This document shows positions 1,422 through 59,559 of a DNA stretch of 64,000 nt, one piece after another; positions within the stretch are counted from its first letter, which is position 1; the number at the start of each line of letters is the position of its first letter. The translations under genes were made by a program, and so were the position numbers. This DNA comes from Mytilus edulis. Lineage: Eukaryota. The stretch covers positions 16,182,001-16,246,000 of the forward strand of contig NC_092348.1 of assembly GCF_963676685.1 (NCBI RefSeq), written 5' to 3'. Below the pieces are notes generated by a model. That model ran no database searches. It was not told where the DNA came from and worked only from the letters and a program-made list of their open reading frames with translations.

Positions 1422-4400
1422 TTTTGATTCTGGTGGATACAGCAACGCTGATGTTTGGATTGGTTATTATTTTAAAGACGTGTCAACAAAGGAATATGCT
1501 TGGATAAACGGTGAAAAATCTAGCTATGAAAACTGGAACCCTGATGACCCAGATTATAAAGAAGATTCTTGTGTTCGCTTAAAACAACGAGCTCAATATA
1601 AATTTGCTGATTGGGATTGTTTAGGAGAGTATTTTTACCTGTGTACAAGTAAGTATCAAAGACAATTCCGACCATTCGATCAAAAATGTAAATTACTTCC
1701 GCATTAGTGCATACTCTCAGATAACAATACAATCTTTTTGTTTCTTTCTTTTTTTTTTTTCATTATCAATGTTGAATTACCATGATAATTATTTGCTTCA
1801 GATGAATTATATTATCTTTATAGTCTTTATATATGAGCTCGAACAACAAAGTATACGATTACAAAATTGCTATTGCATGATGAGTTGACAGATAACAAAA
1901 TTGAGAATGGAAATGGAGAATGTTTCAAAAAGACAACAACTCGACCATAGAGTAGACAACAGCCGATGCATGTATTTGTTTTTTTTATACATTTAGGTGG
2001 CTCACCACCGGTAGTCGAAGATACAACAAACACAATAGTCACTACCTTAGGATCATCTGTATCGTTTGACTGTAGTTATACGTCGCTATGGGATGCAGTA
2101 GTACAATGGGTTCATATCACACCAAACCGAATAAGCATCATTAATGACACATTAGAACCGGTATTGTACAGTCAGTCACCACATTCCGTCGGAACAGTAA
2201 CCAAGAGTACATTACATATTACGAGTTTTAATTCATCTGATGTCGGTTCGTATCAATGTCAAGTGACCAATCAGTTTGGCACAGGGATGAGTAAGAACAA
2301 CACTCTGAAGAAACACAAAAGTGAGTTCATTTTCATTCTTACTTTGTATTGTATATTTTCAGAAGAGCTGACATATTTGGTTTTTTTTTTCTATGTTGTG
2401 GTTGGTATGCTGTTTATCTTTTGTTCTTTTATCTTTCATTTTGTCACGGATTTGTTAGTTACAGGGAGATAACTCTGTAAAGTCAGCTAAACGTTTTAAT
2501 TACGTTGTGTTGTAAAAGGAATATTAAGCTTCTCAATGATCACAATTGGTGTTTGTAAAACTGCTATTTAACCAGTGTAATTTTTCTGACAAAACGGTTC
2601 GTTCAAATTTTTTATATTTTTTTTTATTTTTATTTAAGGGTCAAAGTAAGTACTTTGACAAACTTTTATGAAAATTAAACGAGCCAAATTAATTTTAGTG
2701 CAAGTGTTGGGTACCACCTTAATATGAACATTAAATATTAATGCTTTAATCATCGCCAAAAAAGTTTTTTAAATGTTTTTTTCAGAAATCTCGTGTTGAA
2801 CCATTATCCTGTACATTAATAATGAATTATAGTTTAATAAACCTATTTTCCTCATTAGAAGATCTTAGAAGCAAAATCTATATCCATCAACGATATTTGC
2901 AGATTTTCTCTTTAGAGATGGAGATTACACTTGGCTTGAAGCTAAAGCTGGCTGCCAAACATTGAACATGGAGCTAGCTGTTTTGTCAACAACGATTGAT
3001 CACAACGATGCAGTCAACTATTTGTACAGGTAAATACACCTTGTTGGTTTTTTTTTAGGTATTTTGTACATGAATCTATTTTCGTTTTATACAAATGTGT
3101 TACTATCCCAATCTCTACAATAGTAAAACAAACTTGCTATTTTTCTGCGACTGACTTCTTTACTTCAGCACTCCAATATATTGACAACAATGTGTGAACA
3201 GAACACATAAAACAAAATATGACCTATAGTTGATAATTTATGAGTCACTTGGTCTCTGGTGGGGAGTTGTCTCATTGGCAATCATACCACATCTTCATGT
3301 TCATGGGTACAATAGTCAACTTTATGTTATAATCTTAATCAGTATAAAACAAATAACTATCCAAACAAGGAGAAAAAAGGCATATATACACTCTATAGTG
3401 AAACAAATCAGGTGAAATTTCCATTATACATTTCACTGTCCGCTTTTCAATCAAATTGACCATCTAATTACATATGTAGCAACTATTCGACATTTTTTAA
3501 AAAGGTTCTAGGTATTTCTACGGTTAGTTTATCCTGGCTCAAAATAACTGTTAATTATTGCAATCTTTGGTACAAATACTAGGATAATGGGTCGGAATAT
3601 CAAAATATGTGTTAAAATGTATGGCATACGTCTATCAGTCCTAAATGCTTTCAATGTGCTAGTTCACACGATTGATGTCCACACTTTTTTTCCGGGAATA
3701 TTAGTCTGATTCCGAATAGAACCTTCTTTGCTCTACATCATATATATTTTGCATGCTAGGAAGCTAATCAACACGTTCCAACTTCCATTGCTATGGTATT
3801 ACCCGACTATGAATCAAAGTGACTAACTCCCGCAAGCGAGTCGAGCACGCTAAAAGAATTACCGATGCGGTTTCTGAAAAGTACAAGTAACTAGAAATGT
3901 TTATGATTTTTTTTTTTGGAACTTATATTTGCAGTAACAATTTAAACCCTAATGGAATATGGATTGGACTATATAGCGATTTAGATAACAATGCAAGTCA
4001 GTTTATTTGGATAAATGGAGTTCGGGTAATGTCTCTAGATTTGGCTGTCAATGAACCTGACAATGAACAGATCAGAAATCAATCCACATGTGTTCGCATG
4101 AAACCTAGCTCCCAATACGCACTTGACGATGTTAAATGTACAGACACATCACCTTATTTGTGTACGGGTGAGTTCAATTTTTGTGAGAGTATTCTATGTT
4201 TATTTTTTTAACAAAAGTAAGTTCAATGCATTTAAAGGAAATAAACATTAGTCGCAACAGATTAGTTGTGAAATAAAAATATCAAGGAGGATGTTCACGT
4301 CTGATTGCAATCTACATACTGTGCAGTCGTTTCGCTTACAAATATTTTACAATGAGACATTATATTCTGTCGTATTTGAATTACATTCGGGATCCTATGG

Positions 4401-15900: not shown

Positions 15901-18703
15901 CGTAATTTCTTTTTAGATATACTCATCATATATACCAGGATTGAAATTAAACAAGATTAGACGTAGTTGTTTCTTAGTTAATTAATCAAGATAAATTAAA
16001 GACATTATATGGGATATGTATTCATCTTCTCAATTATAATCTTTCTCAATTTGTTATCAAATATCTTGTCCTCGAGGTCCTTAACTTTAATGCGTATTTG
16101 GTGCAGTAGCATTGGTACTGTTGATGTTATAACATTTATTATTGGTATATTATTTTTTTTTCTATATAAGCAAACTTACTATACTTCATCATATTCAAAT
16201 TTATTAACTAATTTCATTATTTCATTATTATTATATTTCTAGCTCCTGTATCCAACTATCTTGGTGAAAAATATACATATAGAGTGGTGATAGGGATAGG
16301 AAGCTGTTTAGTACTGATAGGTCAGACTGCAAGTGCGTTTGTGCCTAAATTAGAATTCCTTTACATCACCTACGGAATAATAACAGGTAAATTATATTTC
16401 TTTTCTTTGTTTCCAAATTTTAAATTAGGATTTGAAGGCAAAACTATAAAATCACACTTTATTATTATATGTGCATGCCATTAAGATAGGGTTGTATAGG
16501 TCTAACAGCATAAATATACATACATAAAGCCCCGCATTTTTAAATTGTTGAAATTGTTATCATTTTCTTAGGAGGTAGCATTTAAACATATGTGACATCT
16601 TAGTAAATCTGCTTCCACTTTGTCCAGCCACATAGCCCCATTACTTTAATAGTTTACAATTGCCTTATATGTTTTCCGTAGAGTTAATCTAATTATACAT
16701 TTTTTACACAATTTATGGTTTCTCTAGGAGTGCCAATTTGCATTAAACAAAACTTGGTTAACTTTGTAATTTCATTATCTATTTTATAGGAATGGGATAT
16801 GGATTAATCTTTGGTCCGTGCTCTACTATACTGAGTTTTTATTTTGACAAAAAGCGGGGTTTAGCAACAGGAATAATGGCATCGTGTAGTGGTATAGGCA
16901 ATATGTGCTTTCCGTATATGTACAAGTATTTGATAGAAAATTACGGTCTGCCAGGAACTATTTTAATAGCTGGAGCAGTTTATTTCCATGTTTGTCCTGT
17001 TAGCATGTTTCTTAGACAACCAATATATGTGACAAGGCAAATAGTAGAAAGGCAAGCACGACAAAAGGAGACGCAAAAATGTGGAGCGTTAAAACGAATA
17101 TTTAGATTCGATCTTTTCAAAAATTCGAAATTTAGTGTCTATATAACGGCAATATGCTTACAAGCTACAAATACTACATCAAATAAAGTTATTTTACCAG
17201 GCTATATTCGAGGTCTGGGTTTTGGTATTGAAACCATAACACTAGCAGTTTCTTTATATGGTGCTTCGGAACTTGTAGGGAGAATATTATTGGGATGGTT
17301 TGCAGATAAAAATGTTGTATCTAGAATAACCATATTTATGATATGCTCTTTTATATGTGATATCACAGCGTTTTGCATGCCTCACTTACCATACAAGCCG
17401 GCTGTAATAGCTTATGCCGTTGTTATAGGAGCTTTTTCTGGATCAATTTGGGGTTTAAACCAAGTAATCATAATTGACTGTGTTGGGCTAAAACATTTGT
17501 CTCCAGCATTTGGTTTGTTGTCGATGAGTATCGGTATAATTATATGTATAAGCAAACCAATAGCCGGTAAGTTAATATAAGTATAACTGTCCTGGTCCTG
17601 CATTTGTCTACGTTTTTTTTGTAATGTTTATTTACAGAATTCAGTATCATTGGTGAATAATAGTGATTCAACTTAACTATTTATTCAAACCATTTGTAAT
17701 TTTACGAAGACAACTTCATGCTTGGCAAAGTCTTCTATTACAAATGTTTTGCGATTCATAATGCCTGGCAATCTTACTGGAATATCAGGAATAGAGGAAG
17801 AGTCGATGTATGCACAAGACAAATTAGTAGCTTCCATCAAAAGCTATCGACTAGACGGTGCAGTATACAAACCCAAAACGTTATGATAATGTTTGGTTCA
17901 GGCAGAAGTCACTTTCTATTCAATCTATAACCAGTTAACTTTTAAGAAGAAGAGTTAAATAACATGCAAATACAATGCATGTTTGTTGGTTTGAATGTAC
18001 AAGTTGAAATATCATCATTTACCAATACTACATTTTTTACTTAAATTTCCAAATAGATATATGAAAAAAGTACAATTAAACACCCTATTCAAAAACACAA
18101 GCAACAGTAAAAACAATGTTTTACAGAACATTAAAGATTGAGTAACACTAAACAAATCAAAACCAGGATAAAGTCATGATTCCCGGAAGCGATGCAGTTC
18201 CGTCACAACAATAAACACATATCGCCTTGTTCATGGCAATTAAATACTCCGAGATATGTCGAAAATATCACAACCTAGAAAAAGGGAATGTTGATCATAT
18301 CCTTGAGTATATGTGACACAGACATTCCATCGCGCATAACAAAATTACGATGTCGAAATGCTTTCATTTAATAGTCTTATATTTTATCTTATATTGTCGA
18401 CTGATTTGAATATTTTTAAATTGTTTTTCTGGTCTCATTTATGTTTTTCAAAATAATATTGTTTCAGTTGATGAAAGGTTTTGTTTACTTTACATAGGTT
18501 TGCTGGAAGATGCAACTGGGTCTTGGACTTCATCATTTTATTTCGTTGGTATTCTTAGTGCACTTGCTGTTGTATTATGCTTACTGGAACGTCCGATTTC
18601 ACATATCTGGTGCTGTCATCGAATAGTAGCAGACGACATCATTGATGTTTCCCGCGATATTGTCGATAAGTCCATTCCTGTGGCTTATAAATTTAACGGA
18701 TAG
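12917..18703 (+). CDS. SLC16/monocarboxylate transporter family MFS protein, 487 aa. Exons 12917-13109, 15698-15841, 16243-16386, 16790-17566, 18498-18703
   Basis: TM1 motif DKGYAW, SVKSFG, SLC16 signature YFDKKRGLATGI, TM8 ELVGR, GLLEDATGSW; all introns are phase-1 GT-AG and the total is 1464 nt in frame. Confidence 0.9.
13960..14196 (+). repeat. Short interspersed repeat (intronic)
   Basis: Reverse-complement relatives near 7260-7480 and 25070-25210 share the GACAACGCCATGGC motif. Confidence 0.55.
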
Positions 18704-25200: not shown

Positions 25201-26794
25201 AAGCAAAACGAACAGTTATTTTTTTTAGTCAGTATTTTTTTGACATTGGATTGCGTCTGACAATATATATCCCTTGAGGTGAATTTAGTGATAATTCAAA
25301 TACAACTAATCAGGGTTTTTTATTGTCCAAAGCAACTACTTCATTTTAGGGTCGAGCTACCCATTTAGTTTTTTGTTGCTAGTTTTGTAAACTTGTATCT
25401 TGTATCACCCCATGGCATCTCTTTGTTTTGATTTTATCCGGTTGTATCAGAAAATAGTAAAATCACAAAAATACTGAATCAAATGACAAAATCAAAAGTT
25501 CAAACACATCAAAGTAGGGATAACAACTGTCTTATTCCTGATTTGGTACAGGCATTTCTTATGTAGAAAATAAAAATGGCAGATTAAACCTGGTTGTATA
25601 AATTACAGAGAACATTTTTGAGATGGCCGATGATACCGGACTCATACCTATACAGCAATCAATTCCATCCGACCTACAAGACAAAGTTACTGCAATATCC
25701 GATATATGTTCAAAAACTGCAGGTAAATTATATATTTCTTTTCAATTAAAATGTTCAAGTTAATACTGTTTCAATCATGTTAGATCATGTAAAAATTTGA
25801 AAACTAAACTTATATAATTAGCCCACAGTATTACTCCTACTTTAAAACAGTGTCAAATTATTTCTCACACGGAATTTCAAATACTGAAACTGAATCAAGT
25901 GTGCTATGGGTAATATTTTCAAAGTGTACATGGTTGGCTAATAATGCCTTTCAAATTGGAAAAAGGAACTAAATAATGATATGACGTTATTTTCAAATTT
26001 GGATACACGAGCAGCGAAATTACCTAGGCATTAAGATTCTGAAGTAGCCAGTTATAAATAATATAACCTCTTGTCAATTATTTTATTGTGGTCATATTTC
26101 TGACAAAAAGTATGATATCAAATACTTATATGCAGTATTTTTAATCGAGTGTATTTTTTATATCTACCAGGTCTTCCAGATGCCTTGGATGACAATAAGA
26201 AAAGATGGCTTGTTGTTGGTATATGTCTCCACTCAGTGATCTCACCTACACTGCGAACGTTTATTACTCCGGTTCTTGACACCTTATATAACTCACTTGT
26301 AGTTTCAGATAACATTGATAAGCAAACATATAGTACTCATTTGAAGAAATATATACCAACTAAAACTAATTTGAATTATGAGGCTATTAACACCAACAGT
26401 ACTAAGCTTGTAAGAAACGTTAAGCAGTACATGCAGTATGACTACAGAGTCTACAATGCTGTTGATTTATCCAAACTATTTGTACAGACGTTTATGGCTC
26501 ATTACACAGCGATCGACGATTCTTGTGATTCATCAGCTTTGCTAGGAATCATCATAAATATTTTACCAAGTCTACAATCTACTGCTAAAAAGGCAAGTAT
26601 AAAATAAGCCTATATTTTGATAAGCATATTTTCGTACAAACTTTAGAAGATAATTTTTGAAATGACCCCAATGAAATATAGTTTCAATTGTTAAAACACC
26701 AAATGTGCAATAAAATTGATTAATAAAAAAAGAAATTGTCACAAACTATATTCTCCTTTTTGATACTTTGCAAAAGTGTAGCTTATATCAGGCT

Positions 26795-27100
26795 TTAATC
26801 CCGCTGCAAATGTTTGCACCTGTCCTAAGTCAGGAATCTGATGTACAGTAGTTGTCGTTTGTTTATGTAATATATACGTGTTTCTCGTTTCTCGTTTTGT
26901 TTATATAGATTAGACCGTTGGTTTTCCCGTTTGAATGGTTTTACACTAGTAATTTTGGGGCCCTTTATAGCTTGTTGTTCGGTGTGAGCTAAGGCTCCGT
27001 GTTGAAGGCCGTACTTTAACCTATAATGGTTTACTTTTTAAATTGTTATTTGTATGGAGAGTTGTCTCATTGGCACTCACACCACATCTTCCTATATCTA
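26795..27100 (+). repeat. Short interspersed repeat, also at 54540-54727
   Basis: Shared CGTTGGTTTTCCCGTTTGAATGG...TGTCTCATTGGCACTCAC...CATCTTCCTATATCT. Confidence 0.7.
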
Positions 27101-27677
27101 TTTAAAAAATATATCACTAAAAATTATTGGTCATCAAGCTTGATAAGAATTAATTAAATTTTGTTAAAAAGATATGGGAAAACACTTTTGTTTGAATAGA
27201 CAGGAAACTTAATTTTAAGATGAATTATGAGGAGATGGCTGTTAACATGTTAGCTCACAGTACTGATTTTCTTGCTTCAAAACAAAAATTAAAATAATAC
27301 ACGAGTTTATAAATCAAATTATTATTTAATTATTGCCCTTTTTAAACAATTTTTTTTCTTCGAAATGGAACCAAACAAAAAAAGTATGTATTTGTAAAAG
27401 CAGTTGATTATATATCAAATTATTAGTTTCTTTTAATGTCAGATAGTTCAACCATATGAATTGCGGCAGTACTTCCATTTTGCGCCAATTTGCATTTCAT
27501 TTGCCCAAAAAAATCTTTCATTGCACTGCAATTATATTTCATTTGCGCCTTGTATATAAAAATAAAGATCATTTGCGCCAATATTAAAGATTCTAAAGGT
27601 TAATCCTATTAAGAATAGATTTATTCAAAAGATACTTTTAATAATAACTTTTTACCCAAGTTTTGTTCATACCGCAC

Positions 27678-40437: not shown

Positions 40438-43400
40438 TAATAATGGATTTACTCCACTGCATTTCGCTTCTCTTGGAAATTCCGATGATATAGTTAGGCT
40501 ATTACTGAAAAGAGGTGTTGATGTTAACCATCAAACAGCTGTACAAGGTAATACATCTTTGCACCTTGCATGCACATGGAGAGATGTGGTATTTCAAAGA
40601 AACACAAATGTCACAATTTCATTATGTGACAATAATGGGAAATCGTTTGAAGTTGGTGTTTCCAAATTTAGTTCACCTTTTCCAACACATGTCTGTTATG
40701 ACACTCATGGTATTCATCAATCTATCGTGCGGTTGTTATTAGAATACCAGGCTGATGTTTCATTATGTAACTATAAAGGACAAACGCCGTTACATATTGC
40801 TTGCGAAAGTGGTGATTACTATGTTGTCAAAGTGTTGGTAGAAATTAATGCAGACATAACCGTGTGCGACAACGACGGAAATACTCCACTTGATCTTGCA
40901 TGTCAACGAGAACACACAGATGTCGTGACATTGTTACTCTACAGTATAACAAATATATCACAGTTAGATAATGATGGAAAGACTGCATTTCATTCAGCAT
41001 GTAAGGGTTATGGAAACAGGAAAAAAGATGTTGGATGGTTCTTTGGCAATCCTTGGCAGCGTCCAACCGATAATGATATTGAAGCACACAAATCTGTCAT
41101 CGAGATTTTGCGCCATAAAAAAGCAGACGTAAATAAACGTAATAAACATGGAGAAACACCTTTACATACAGCTTGTGAATATGGTCCTATTGATATTGTA
41201 AAGATTCTTCTAAATGAAGGTGCAGATATATCACTATGTGACATGAAAGGTCAGTCTATCGTGTATAAGACATGTGCTGGAGGAAATAGTAGAATATTAA
41301 ATATTTTGCTTCAAAGAAATGCCAACTTTTTAAAATGCGACAATGATGGAAACTCGGCACTGCATGTAACGTGCAAAAACAGAGGTAAAGTGCAAAAGAA
41401 ATGGCCCCCGGGTAATCTGAAGCGTAAATTACCATGCAAATTATCTTCGACCTCAAAGTTTGAATTTGAAGAACTTTCGATATACATAGCAGATGAGTTT
41501 GAATGTGTTTTAAAAATACTTGTCGATCAAAACGTAGACCTGAACATAAGAAATAACTGTCAACAAACACCACTCCATATTGCAACTGAAGGTGGTCATT
41601 TACCTCTGGTTAACATGCTTGTTGAACGAAATGTTGATGTTAATATGTGTGACAACAACGGAAAATCACCATTATATTTGGCATGTGAAATGAGACATAT
41701 AGATATTGTTAAAATTTTATTGTTACATAATGCCAACATGCATTTAGTAGATAACAACAAACGGTCTCCGTTTCATGCTGTTTGCAACGGGTTGAGTCTT
41801 CCACCAACTGAAATAGAAATTCAAAGTGTACGAGATTTAGTTTCACTTCTAATAGACTATAAAGGAGATCTTTCTCACCCTGACAATGACGGTAAAATAC
41901 CATTACACTTTGCTTGTAAAGTCGGTTGTCTTGCTATTGTCGAATCGTTGGCAGTAAAGAAAGCACACTTTACTGTATGTGATTCAAATGGCCAGACGCC
42001 ATTAGATGAAGCCAAAAAAGCAGGACATTGGGACACTGTGCGTTTTCTTGAAAACTTTGAAGATGACACGAGTAAAAATTACAATCCGTTTTATTTTCTG
42101 TGGTGAAAATCTGAATCTATTTGCGACATTTTTTTAGTTGTCAATCGCGTTTTTTTTTCTGATATACTAGTACCTGGGGATTTCGAAGTAAAGTTTTGTA
42201 CTGCATTATTCAAACAAGACTTGTGATCTTATCTTGTTAACATACATTTGAGATAATGAAAAGTCCCAAAATAAACACTGTCAATTACTATTCTATACTT
42301 ATTAAAGTTTTATAAATCCTGGTGAAACAAGATTACTTTTTTTCCTTCGCCAATATGAAAACAGAAATATGTTTAAATAATGTGTAAGAATTTTTTTTCC
42401 AATTTCAACGCCTTATCTAATATAAATTTAATTTTCTATCAAAACTGGAGTCAGTACGGCGATAACTGAAACTCCCCGTAATCAAAGATCAAAAAGGTGA
42501 TAAAGAAAAAGAACTAAGGTGTTAACAGCTCGGAGCATTGACTGCTCAATTTCCCAATGTAAAATATATAACTTGCATATCATAGATAACCGTACGAAAA
42601 TAAGATTTTATGAAAACCGAAACTTTGTGATTACGAAAAAGGTATTAATAAACATTCCGAATTCCAAAGTAAAGTTAATCCATGCAGATATTTGAAAGCC
42701 AGGGGTTCTTAAAACCCGAAAGAATTTAATAGCTTTATGATTAAAAGGGACTGTTAAATAGTAGTCAAATTCATCAAAGGTGTGTGAGGGAGTTGAAACC
42801 TTAGCTTATTGATAATCTATAAAATCTGACAAAAACCAAATGCTCGTCTTAATCAACCTACAAAACAGTTGGAAAACAGAAGTGATATTCCTGACTTGGT
42901 ACAGGCATTTTCAAGGGAATGGTAGACTAAACATGGTTGTATTGCTAGATAACCTTCCGTTGGTTATAGTTTTGACATGTAAAAACAATTGTGGTATTAC
43001 CCAAACAGACATTAAAGGGTAATGTGACAATAGTTTGGATCCAACAGATATTCAAAACACATCACATGTGATAATTTTCATTCGTCCGAAACGTTTTTCT
43101 GGATTTACTTTTATCAGGAACGATCAAAGCTAAGTATGTAAAAGAACCGAAGCAATTGAAGAGCTGTTTAATAAAATTAAAAAAAAAAAAGGACCGAATC
43201 GCGGCTAATTCCATCTAAGGATAATATTTGCTGATTGAGTTTAAACCTTAAATTTAATTAAAAATGAATCAATAGACAACTTCAGAAAGGTTTGTTATAA
43301 ATCAAGTCTTTTTTCGAATTACTGACTTCTAAGCTGGTGATACTCTCGTGGACTGAAGTCGGCCAGCCGAAGTATTGACCCTGAAAACACAAATTGGTAA

Positions 43401-58095: not shown

Positions 58096-59559
58096 TCACT
58101 TTAGAGTTTGGTAGTCATAAATTCTTAAACATTTAGAATCAGCAATCCATAATTGACCCTCTCTATATGCAATGGCTGCTGGTGAACTAAGACCATCCTT
58201 TTTATCAATGAGAATTTTTCGAAACTGTAACTTTCCATCCAATTGATATATTGCATTAAACTGCATATCGCTTGCTAATATGTTGCCGTCGTTATCGTAG
58301 CAAAGTCCTTTGCAGACGTATTGTAAGTACGGGCTTTGGCCAGATTTACCAGAGAAGGTATATGCATTTTTTGGTTCGAGGCTATAGGAATAAACATAGT
58401 TCCGTATTCCAGTGGTTTGTTCTACGTCATATATTATGCTAAAATTGTTACTCGAGTGCACCGACATGCAAGAACTCTCACTTTTACTATTTGCCAGCGT
58501 GAATGATTTCTTTTTTATTCCGTTGGACTCAAAGACTGTCATTTGTCTTGAATCCTTATTACTCATCCATATGAAAACAGAGTTGTCTGACTTCGCGTAA
58601 TCCATACATAACGGCATGTACGGATCTGTACTTGTGAAAGGCGTCACATTACCTCTTGCGTCAATTTGATTAATAAAGCTTTTTGTTCTATTAAGGACTA
58701 ACAAATCTCCATTATTCAGAACAGCAATGTCGTCCGCTTCTTCAGAATAAACTGCCATCTGTATTCCAGAGAAGTCAAGACGGAATAATTTCCTATCTGA
58801 AATAAGCCATGCGTCAGATCTGTTAACTGGGATAATTTTCGTGACCGGAACTACCAGATCTGCAAGAGGAATCAATGTCACGAGACCTTTCTTATCTACT
58901 TCCGCCATAGTGTTGTCGTCTGATAAAAGCTCATGAATATTGTATGTTTGTGTAGATATATCATACGTCTTTCTCGTACCACAATCTTCTCCAATACAAC
59001 CTAATAATCTGTCACCAGACGGCGCATTCAGCTGTATTAATAATGGTGCGTCCTTGTTATATTTTGACTTTAAACATTCTTTGTTAATAGAACATTTTTT
59101 CAAGCTACAGTATAACCTTATAAGTGAATCCTCTGATGCAGGATTTTCCATTTCATTTTCACAAAACTTAACCTCATCCACAAGGCTATGAATCTGATTC
59201 CTGCTTACCTCAAATACTTCCTTTGAAGTCTTCAATAGATCCTTAGCTTCTATCTCAATCTTGTTCTTCCACCGCATTTCACATCTGTGGATATCATGTT
59301 CTACTTTTGCCTCGTCTTGAACATTTTTTTCATTCGCTTCTTCTAACTGCTTTTTAGTTTCTGCAAGATCATGTTGAGTTGCTAATTTATTATCTGAGCA
59401 CCAATAATTCACCTTGTTCCTAATAATGTCTTGTGATTCAAATAATCCTTTGACCTTATGCTGTTGATGATTCTCTAACAAACACTGAACACATATGATA
59501 TCTTCACATTCTTTACAAAAGAGGCGCAATTGTTCATCTTGGTGTTGTGAGCAGTTCAT
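58096..59559 (-). CDS. RING-less TRIM-like protein: B-box2, coiled coil, NHL-type beta-propeller, 487 aa, single coding exon
   Basis: CSQH...LFCKECEDIICVQC...HQQH; heptad region; propeller motifs GLCYDNDGNILASD and DGLSSPAAIA. AAAATG start with an upstream in-frame TAA; 5'UTR acceptor at 59617-59618. Confidence 0.9.
   Translation of the reverse strand: MNCSQHQDEQLRLFCKECEDIICVQCLLENHQQHKVKGLFESQDIIRNKVNYWCSDNKLATQHDLAETKKQLEEANEKNVQDEAKVEHDIHRCEMRWKNKIEIEAKDLLKTSKEVFEVSRNQIHSLVDEVKFCENEMENPASEDSLIRLYCSLKKCSINKECLKSKYNKDAPLLIQLNAPSGDRLLGCIGEDCGTRKTYDISTQTYNIHELLSDDNTMAEVDKKGLVTLIPLADLVVPVTKIIPVNRSDAWLISDRKLFRLDFSGIQMAVYSEEADDIAVLNNGDLLVLNRTKSFINQIDARGNVTPFTSTDPYMPLCMDYAKSDNSVFIWMSNKDSRQMTVFESNGIKKKSFTLANSKSESSCMSVHSSNNFSIIYDVEQTTGIRNYVYSYSLEPKNAYTFSGKSGQSPYLQYVCKGLCYDNDGNILASDMQFNAIYQLDGKLQFRKILIDKKDGLSSPAAIAYREGQLWIADSKCLRIYDYQTLK

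Follow-up and report, generated by a model that had tools for sequence, protein, structure and literature searches.

Introduction

The locus studied here raises the question of whether it encodes a single receptor, in which a sensor would switch on a built-in ribonuclease (RNase), or an interrupted version of one. It lies at 25623-42106 of a 64,000-nucleotide stretch of the Mytilus edulis genome (contig NC_092348.1 of RefSeq assembly GCF_963676685.1), hereafter the window, and all positions are given in window coordinates. A sequence-only reading had joined five open reading frame (ORF) pieces from this region into one frame of about 1705 amino acids, with an N-terminal HEPN-like domain, a coiled coil, a STAND NTPase and more than 20 ankyrin repeats. 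We searched the window exon by exon and used two public protein models for the joined protein: P0001 (XP_071172953.1, 1162 amino acids, 'uncharacterized protein [Mytilus edulis]') and P0308 (XP_063442668.1, 1704 amino acids, from M. trossulus). On balance, we favor a model in which the locus is a transposon-split allele of a gene with the order HEPN, linker, nSTAND3 and about 23 ankyrins, whose intact form, of about 1705 amino acids, would be a sensor-activated RNase.

Results and Discussion

A DNA transposon interrupts the last exon

The 801-amino-acid ORF at 35772-38177 matched exclusively Mytilus proteins, with P0001 on top at 100% identity, and tblastn together with exon-wise exact matching placed the five exons of P0001, from 25623 to 38140, in the window at 100%. 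All of the ORF pieces named in the sequence-only reading exist on the plus strand, but the coding pieces number six rather than five, as the short exon at 25623-25722 counts as well. Nor do they form one frame of about 1705 amino acids: exons 1-5 reproduce P0001, whereas the last two pieces are separated by a transposon and the frame ends at 38175-38177. The TAA at this position is also the end of P0001, and a 560-amino-acid ankyrin ORF at 40424-42106 lies outside that protein.

The interval 38141-40437 is not an intron but a transposon inserted in what was one ancestral ankyrin exon. It is framed by the arms of a 27-nucleotide inverted repeat, at 38182-38208 and 40379-40405 (96% complementary), and the element has 4378 first-look candidates in the M. 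edulis genome, the scored copies being 85-99% identical. All six copies that we compared start with TAGTGGAGTGACAA, end with TTGTCACCGTACTA and have their own 3-bp duplication (TAA, TTA, TCA, CTA, TAA and TTA). Because most scored copies are longer, at 3.3-4.4 kb, the copy in the window is an internal-deletion derivative. The closest copy (L007, G000:C1:73516300-73520900), which is 4383 bp long and contains no ORF of more than 96 amino acids, is 98-99% identical, and the insertion is therefore recent. The active transposon family seems to be non-autonomous, and no transposase source was found for it; the longest copy has no ORF above 96 amino acids. A duplication of 3 bp fits PIF/Harbinger, Zator, Academ or CACTA-like elements. 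A candidate 11-bp target duplication (ATAATAGTGGA / ATAATAATGGA) was rejected, as TAGTGGA proved from other copies to be part of the element, which leaves a duplication of 3 bp.

As a result of the insertion, the encoded protein is shortened to 1162 amino acids and 11 ankyrins, and the distal 554 codons are cut off from it. P0001 takes its 11 C-terminal residues from the first 34 bases of the element, which are followed by the stop codon. With the element and one TAA taken out, the frame reads L-T-D-N-N-G-F-T-P-L-H, a perfect ankyrin turn, and the same LTDNNGFTPLH runs straight across the insertion site in P0308 and in P0002 (CAG2191428.1), a protein from a second M. edulis assembly. P0308 is collinear with all six coding pieces at 89-97% identity, reaching 97% between its residues 1150-1704 and the 3' part of exon 5, and P0002 is 95-100% identical to both halves in a global alignment, except for skipped segments. 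A BLAST identity of 66% between P0002 and the distal ankyrins was set aside as repeat misalignment; the global alignment gives 95-100% there, minus a skipped segment of about 140 residues. The uninterrupted frame amounts to 1151 + 554 = 1705 codons, so the length of about 1705 amino acids in the sequence-only reading is that of the uninterrupted allele.

If the 2.3-kb gap were instead an ordinary intron, the locus would make the full 1705-amino-acid protein. Open frames in both halves, a GT at the start of the element right after a complete codon, and the joining of the two halves in P0002 and P0004 would all suit an intron. However, the interval carries terminal inverted repeats (TIRs) and a target duplication, and it recurs many times in the genome. 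Its 3' edge lacks an AG acceptor; the first AG in frame, at 40749-40750, lies about 300 nucleotides into the ankyrin ORF, behind a poor pyrimidine tract. Despite the GT at the start of the element, the frame therefore cannot be rescued by splicing. P0002 also has DNNG, which the empty site alone encodes, whereas the left junction in the window reads DNSG, and RefSeq has two separate genes on this assembly. We regard an intron as highly improbable.

Both of these RefSeq genes are modeled as coding. The downstream model, P0307 (XP_071176234.1, 546 amino acids, ankyrin-only, 'ANKRD50-like'), takes its first 15 residues from an ATG exon within the transposon, and beyond residue 15 it maps to 40511-42103 at 100%. 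This model, which joins 39375-39422 to 40509-42106, may represent a transposon-initiated chimeric transcript or a prediction artifact.

The N-terminal domain resembles HEPN RNases

Exon 3 opens with VRSFIRNPWAHC (29207-29242), which includes R180-N-P-W-A-H185 (29222-29239). HEPN RNases have an Rx4-6H motif with a polar residue (N, D or H) after the Arg, and here that residue is Asn. An exon-3-like segment is present in 75 of 148 representative relatives, and Rx4H is retained in 71 of the 75, with the consensus R-N-x-W-A-H-C; the conservation of R and H across relatives that the sequence-only reading had made a check of its proposal is thus observed. This is the unbiased figure: a 23-sequence alignment (A2) was selected by the motif, and its invariance is not counted.

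The strand and helix placements given here come from an AlphaFold2 model of P0001, with a mean predicted local distance difference test score (pLDDT) of 81.6. The motif is predicted at the end of helix 166-184, with H185 as the first loop residue and another helix at 193-209. The early helices are separated from helix 3 by a variable region (81-153), and the pLDDT of the domain is mostly 85-96. The model of a homologue (P0082, 56% identical, pLDDT 89.7) has the same helices. A motif at helix 3's end and the start of the loop is a HEPN hallmark according to Anantharaman 2013 (PMC3710099), and the P0001 model agrees with it.

Profile searches place the relatives of this protein close to two HEPN families. 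Ten of 55 family members match HEPN_Swt1 (PF18731) and nine of 55 match DUF4559 (PF15112, CXorf38), with E values down to 1e-5 and 1e-6, respectively, just under the threshold. These matches always cover the motif region or the whole domain, and one paralogue, P0203, scores above the HEPN_Swt1 threshold (31.8 versus 27.5 bits). Pfam found no HEPN family in the exons of the window, even at E ≤ 10, and P0001, P0004 and P0308 likewise matched none of the HEPN families, HEPN_DZIP3 (PF18738) being absent from all three at E ≤ 1. In ESM-Atlas, the clusters nearest to residues 30-240 of P0001 come from molluscs, and HEPN_DZIP3 or DUF4559 is present in 11-38% of their members. The family profile found no match among PDB sequences, and a complex prediction for two copies of residues 30-240 scored 0.01, which is evidence neither way.

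The HEPN identity put forward in the sequence-only reading thus draws on motif conservation, the Pfam matches of relatives and the predicted fold, but not on a direct family match, and its proposed Pfam check gave a divided answer, with nSTAND3 above threshold but HEPN_DZIP3, Swt1 and DUF4559 unmatched by this protein. Motif conservation, near-threshold Pfam matches in relatives, fold and language-model neighbors are modest lines of evidence that converge, and the domain probably belongs to HEPN. We place it, with good confidence, on the Swt1/CXorf38 side of the superfamily rather than with DZIP3 proper.

Alternatively, the N-terminus could be a helical adaptor or RNA-binding module without a nuclease, signaling by oligomerization and partner recruitment like Death-fold NLRs. 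The lack of a direct family match on this protein would suit such a module, as would a fold search with a 56%-identical homologue as query, which returned matches in the noise range, with bromodomains, Mob1 and acyl-CoA dehydrogenase bundles alongside HEPN; the best HEPN match among them, the yeast Swt1 HEPN, is listed as inactive in Anantharaman 2013 (PMC3710099). However, R, N and H are almost invariant in very diverged relatives and stand at the canonical position, and this counts against a scaffold, which would not need such conservation, whereas catalytic residues would be expected to show it. We consider the adaptor unlikely and retain the HEPN assignment.

The HEPN-like domain is followed by a linker, encoded by exon 4 and kept in paralogues. 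Its predicted helix (242-324), modeled with low pLDDT, would fit a coiled coil that needs a partner.

A STAND NTPase precedes the ankyrin array

The central domain is a STAND NTPase of the nSTAND3 type, with all switch motifs at the expected positions. P0001 matches nSTAND3 (PF20720) in Pfam with 55.2 bits against a cut-off of 27.2 (E = 8.4e-15), and NACHT at E = 0.03, which is below threshold. The Walker A and Walker B motifs that the sequence-only reading had picked out, along with the R-x4-H motif, are present. GSSGSGKS, VFVIDD, SCRL, FPLLC and YHD are invariant across nine aligned paralogues (alignment A3). We take SCRL, FPLLC and YHD to be the equivalents of sensor-1, GxP and MHD, respectively, on the basis of what is generally known of STAND proteins.

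With a repeat profile derived from these same ORFs, we detected about 11 ankyrins before 38140 and 12-13 after 40441, for a total of about 23-24, in agreement with the earlier estimate of more than 20. Pfam Ank_2 matched the 5' ORF at E values of 8e-58 and 1e-59 and the 3' ORF at 8e-74. In the distal array (40441-42106), four repeats have inserts of 21-58 residues between their helices, at roughly every third repeat. The proposed order of effector, coiled coil, STAND NTPase and ankyrins is supported, with nSTAND3 above its threshold. Pfam found no leucine-rich repeat (LRR) in P0001, which leaves it outside the strict definition of an NLR (NACHT plus LRR). The PADLOC matches were generic P-loop and ankyrin models alone, with no Avs model among them. 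A Foldseek search with the full-length model returned ankyrin proteins exclusively and was uninformative on the STAND and HEPN parts.

The locus belongs to a large gene family

Searches with exon 2 retrieved 268 cluster representatives at E ≤ 0.001, and the family extends to clams, oysters, a hemichordate and a coral. The M. edulis genome has at least 47 copies of this exon, nearly all with an open frame. Paralogues in the same genome carry HEPN_DZIP3 on a STAND-ankyrin body that is 40-47% identical, and the paralogue P0007 matches HEPN_DZIP3 at 6e-39. We think it reasonably likely that the locus is an allele of a lineage-expanded, NLR-like gene family. Pfam thresholds miss this subfamily's HEPN domain, so gene counts that use PF18738 only are too low.

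In a redundant family of this size, the allele could also be a non-functional remnant: a dispensable member, recently struck by a transposon, that has no biology of its own. The stop 11 codons into the element, the 98-99% identity of the closest element copy, which marks the insertion as recent, and the number of family copies all agree with such an origin. On the other hand, the 5' gene retains the coding sequence of the HEPN domain, of an intact NTPase and of 11 ankyrins, the 3' part stays open for 554 codons, and RefSeq treats both halves as coding. We give a non-functional remnant somewhat less than an even chance.

Proposed mechanism and points against it

We infer that the intact protein would act as a sensor-activated RNase. 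In the split-receptor model that we favor, the ankyrin array would be the ligand sensor and would hold the NTPase off. Ligand binding would lead to nucleotide exchange and ATP-driven oligomerization of the NTPase, and the oligomers would bring HEPN domains together, such that paired Rx4H motifs would form an active RNase directed at viral or host RNA. The allele in the window, which has lost half of the presumed sensor, could amount to an altered receptor at best, and to a null at worst.

Several points weigh against this model. P0001 itself matches no Pfam HEPN family, even at E ≤ 1. An hhalign comparison with DZIP3-type HEPN paralogues aligned the motif helix only (54 columns, E = 0.0047, probability 7%), and the query of the fold search was the 56%-identical homologue rather than P0001. 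The exon junctions and expression are predicted. As the sequence-only reading had supposed, no experimental study came up in our literature searches, and no RNase, ATPase or ligand data for any family member. Finally, the HEPN-STAND-ankyrin gene is interrupted in this haplotype.

A more far-reaching model would have the RNxWAHC domain as a distinct, active family of animal HEPN RNases under a STAND switch, and the insertion as a polymorphism that makes the locus a natural experiment. The receptor would be divided between an effector-switch half with 11 ankyrins and an ankyrin-only half with its own transcript started from the transposon, and the two jointly might form an altered, de-repressed or decoy-regulated allele. 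The basis for the second, ankyrin-only transcript is the RefSeq model, and we hold this extension to be quite doubtful.

Comparison with known systems

The HEPN-STAND-repeat gene type is already described in silico (2013, 2021, 2022), and the locus is a further copy, broken by a transposon. The architecture itself has thus been described before: animal fusions of HEPN with NACHT/STAND, ankyrin, Death and similar domains appear in PMC3710099, PMC8662601 and PMC9646362, where an NLR-like RNase role is likewise proposed. Table 1 of Anantharaman 2013 (PMC3710099) lists DZIP3-type HEPN domains fused to ankyrin, CARD, NACHT, Death and LRR, expanded in Nematostella and oyster, as well as CXorf38-type HEPN domains, rated active in that study, fused to NACHT, ankyrin, CARD and Death. 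Tassia 2021 (PMC8662601) reports HEPN-NLRs in nine invertebrate taxa. For pearl oyster, Takeuchi 2022 (PMC9646362) reports over 50 HEPN-NACHT genes whose copy number varies between haplotypes, and that study also puts forward the RNase hypothesis.

Like these bivalve and cnidarian HEPN-NLRs, the protein studied here has an N-terminal HEPN with RNxxxH, a central STAND NTPase and C-terminal repeats, and it shares with them extensive expansions within particular lineages, which in bivalves vary between haplotypes, and the proposed NLR-like RNase role. It differs in having nSTAND3 instead of NACHT, in its ankyrin repeats, and in a HEPN domain that is nearer to Swt1/CXorf38 than to HEPN_DZIP3. CXorf38 (DUF4559) and Swt1-like HEPN domains are its best sequence-profile and fold neighbors, although most family members, this protein included, score below the Pfam thresholds and the signature is RNxWAHC. 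Neither a zinc ribbon insert nor a double-stranded RNA-binding domain is seen in this protein.

RNase L is an animal antiviral effector in which ankyrins sense the ligand and the KEN RNase is activated by dimerization. It shares with the proposed mechanism an ankyrin sensor and a dimerization-switched RNase of the HEPN superfamily, to which KEN is assigned (PMC3710099). However, RNase L has N-terminal ankyrins, a pseudokinase and a C-terminal RNase, whereas the order here is reversed, with a STAND NTPase and no kinase-like domain in Pfam searches. Bacterial proteins with an N-terminal HEPN and a STAND domain have also been noted (PMC3710099), and these, like prokaryotic Avs/AVAST proteins, follow a common logic of effector, STAND and repeat sensor. 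In contrast to the prokaryotic systems, the gene in the window has eukaryotic introns, shows no sign of recent transfer and, as described above, lacks a PADLOC Avs match. Human SAMD9/SAMD9L is reported (PMC10246899) to combine a STAND-like NTPase with a tRNA nuclease of its own that is activated by viruses, and among animal proteins studied by experiment it comes closest to the proposed logic. Its nuclease is not a HEPN, however, the set of domains differs, and we detected no homology.

In invertebrates, HEPN-STAND-repeat proteins may correspond to RNase L and to the STAND defense proteins with nucleases that bacteria have. This copy establishes no new principle; it offers a clean allele/orthologue pair, with an intact form of 1704-1705 amino acids and a transposon-truncated form of 1162, and predicted catalytic and switch residues that are precisely located for mutation. 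It is also an example of recently active DNA transposons remodeling immune-type gene families in mussels.

Gene structure and surroundings

The features of the locus are collected in Table 1. The splice sites of exons 1-5 are consistent, with three GT-AG introns and one GC-AG intron in phases 1, 0, 1 and 1, and the exon order is common to the paralogues and orthologues P0004, P0005, P0057, P0064 and P0080. The GC donor is that of intron 2 in the public model (AAG/GCAAGT, 26593-26598), and the exon ends at the same place in paralogues.

Table 1. Coordinates of the features of the interrupted HEPN-STAND-ankyrin locus (a slash marks the splice site; residues are those of P0001)
Feature	Position	Strand	Remarks
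Exon 1	25623..25722	+	ATG + 33 codons + 1 base; phase 1; donor G/GTAAAT; residues 1-34, 100%
Exon 2	26171..26592	+	First part of HEPN-like domain: long helix 1, variable insert, helix 2; residues 34-174
Exon 3	29207..29375	+	End of putative HEPN helix 3 with R-N-P-W-A-H, helix 4, one more helix; residues 175-231
Exon 4	34518..34835	+	Linker; one predicted 83-residue helix, coiled-coil candidate; residues 231-336
Exon 5, 5' part	35698..38140	+	nSTAND3 NTPase, helical and winged-helix region, ankyrins 1-11 from ~37101
Walker A GSSGSGKS	35814-35837	+	Residues 376-383, after strand 371-376
Walker B VFVIDD	35958-35975	+	Residues 424-429, within strand 423-427
SCRL, presumed sensor-1	36123-36143	+	Arg 482, end of strand 475-482
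FPLLC	36309-36332	+	Residues 542-546, helix of arm
YHD	36654-36674	+	Residues 657-659, after beta-hairpin, like winged-helix MHD motifs
Target-site duplication TAA, left copy	38138..38140	+	Comparison with other element copies
TIR DNA transposon, non-autonomous	38141..40437	+	2297 bp; termini TAGTGGAGTGACAA...TTGTCACCGTACTA
Transposon-internal ATG exon	39375..39422	+	Donor AAG/GTATGT (strong); first 15 residues of XP_071176234.1
Target-site duplication TAA, right copy	40438..40440	+	Comparison with other element copies
Exon 5, 3' part	40441..42106	+	554 open codons + TGA; ankyrins 12 to ~24; Pfam Ank_2 E 8e-74

Intron 3 contains a 181-amino-acid ORF (32125-32670, plus strand) that has no Pfam match and is part of an extremely abundant repeat. 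The M. edulis genome has 42,426 first-look candidates for this repeat; many copies are 95% identical and have a 480-amino-acid open frame, and some stand in tandem at a spacing of 4031 bp. Upstream of the gene, the window contains an immunoglobulin I-set exon (1966-2472, plus strand, E = 5e-8) and a major facilitator superfamily (MFS) transporter exon (16792-17580, plus strand, E = 1e-22). A 487-amino-acid ORF on the minus strand (58096-59559) combines a B-box zinc finger with an NHL repeat, as in a TRIM-NHL-like gene, a family that is also expanded in bivalves.

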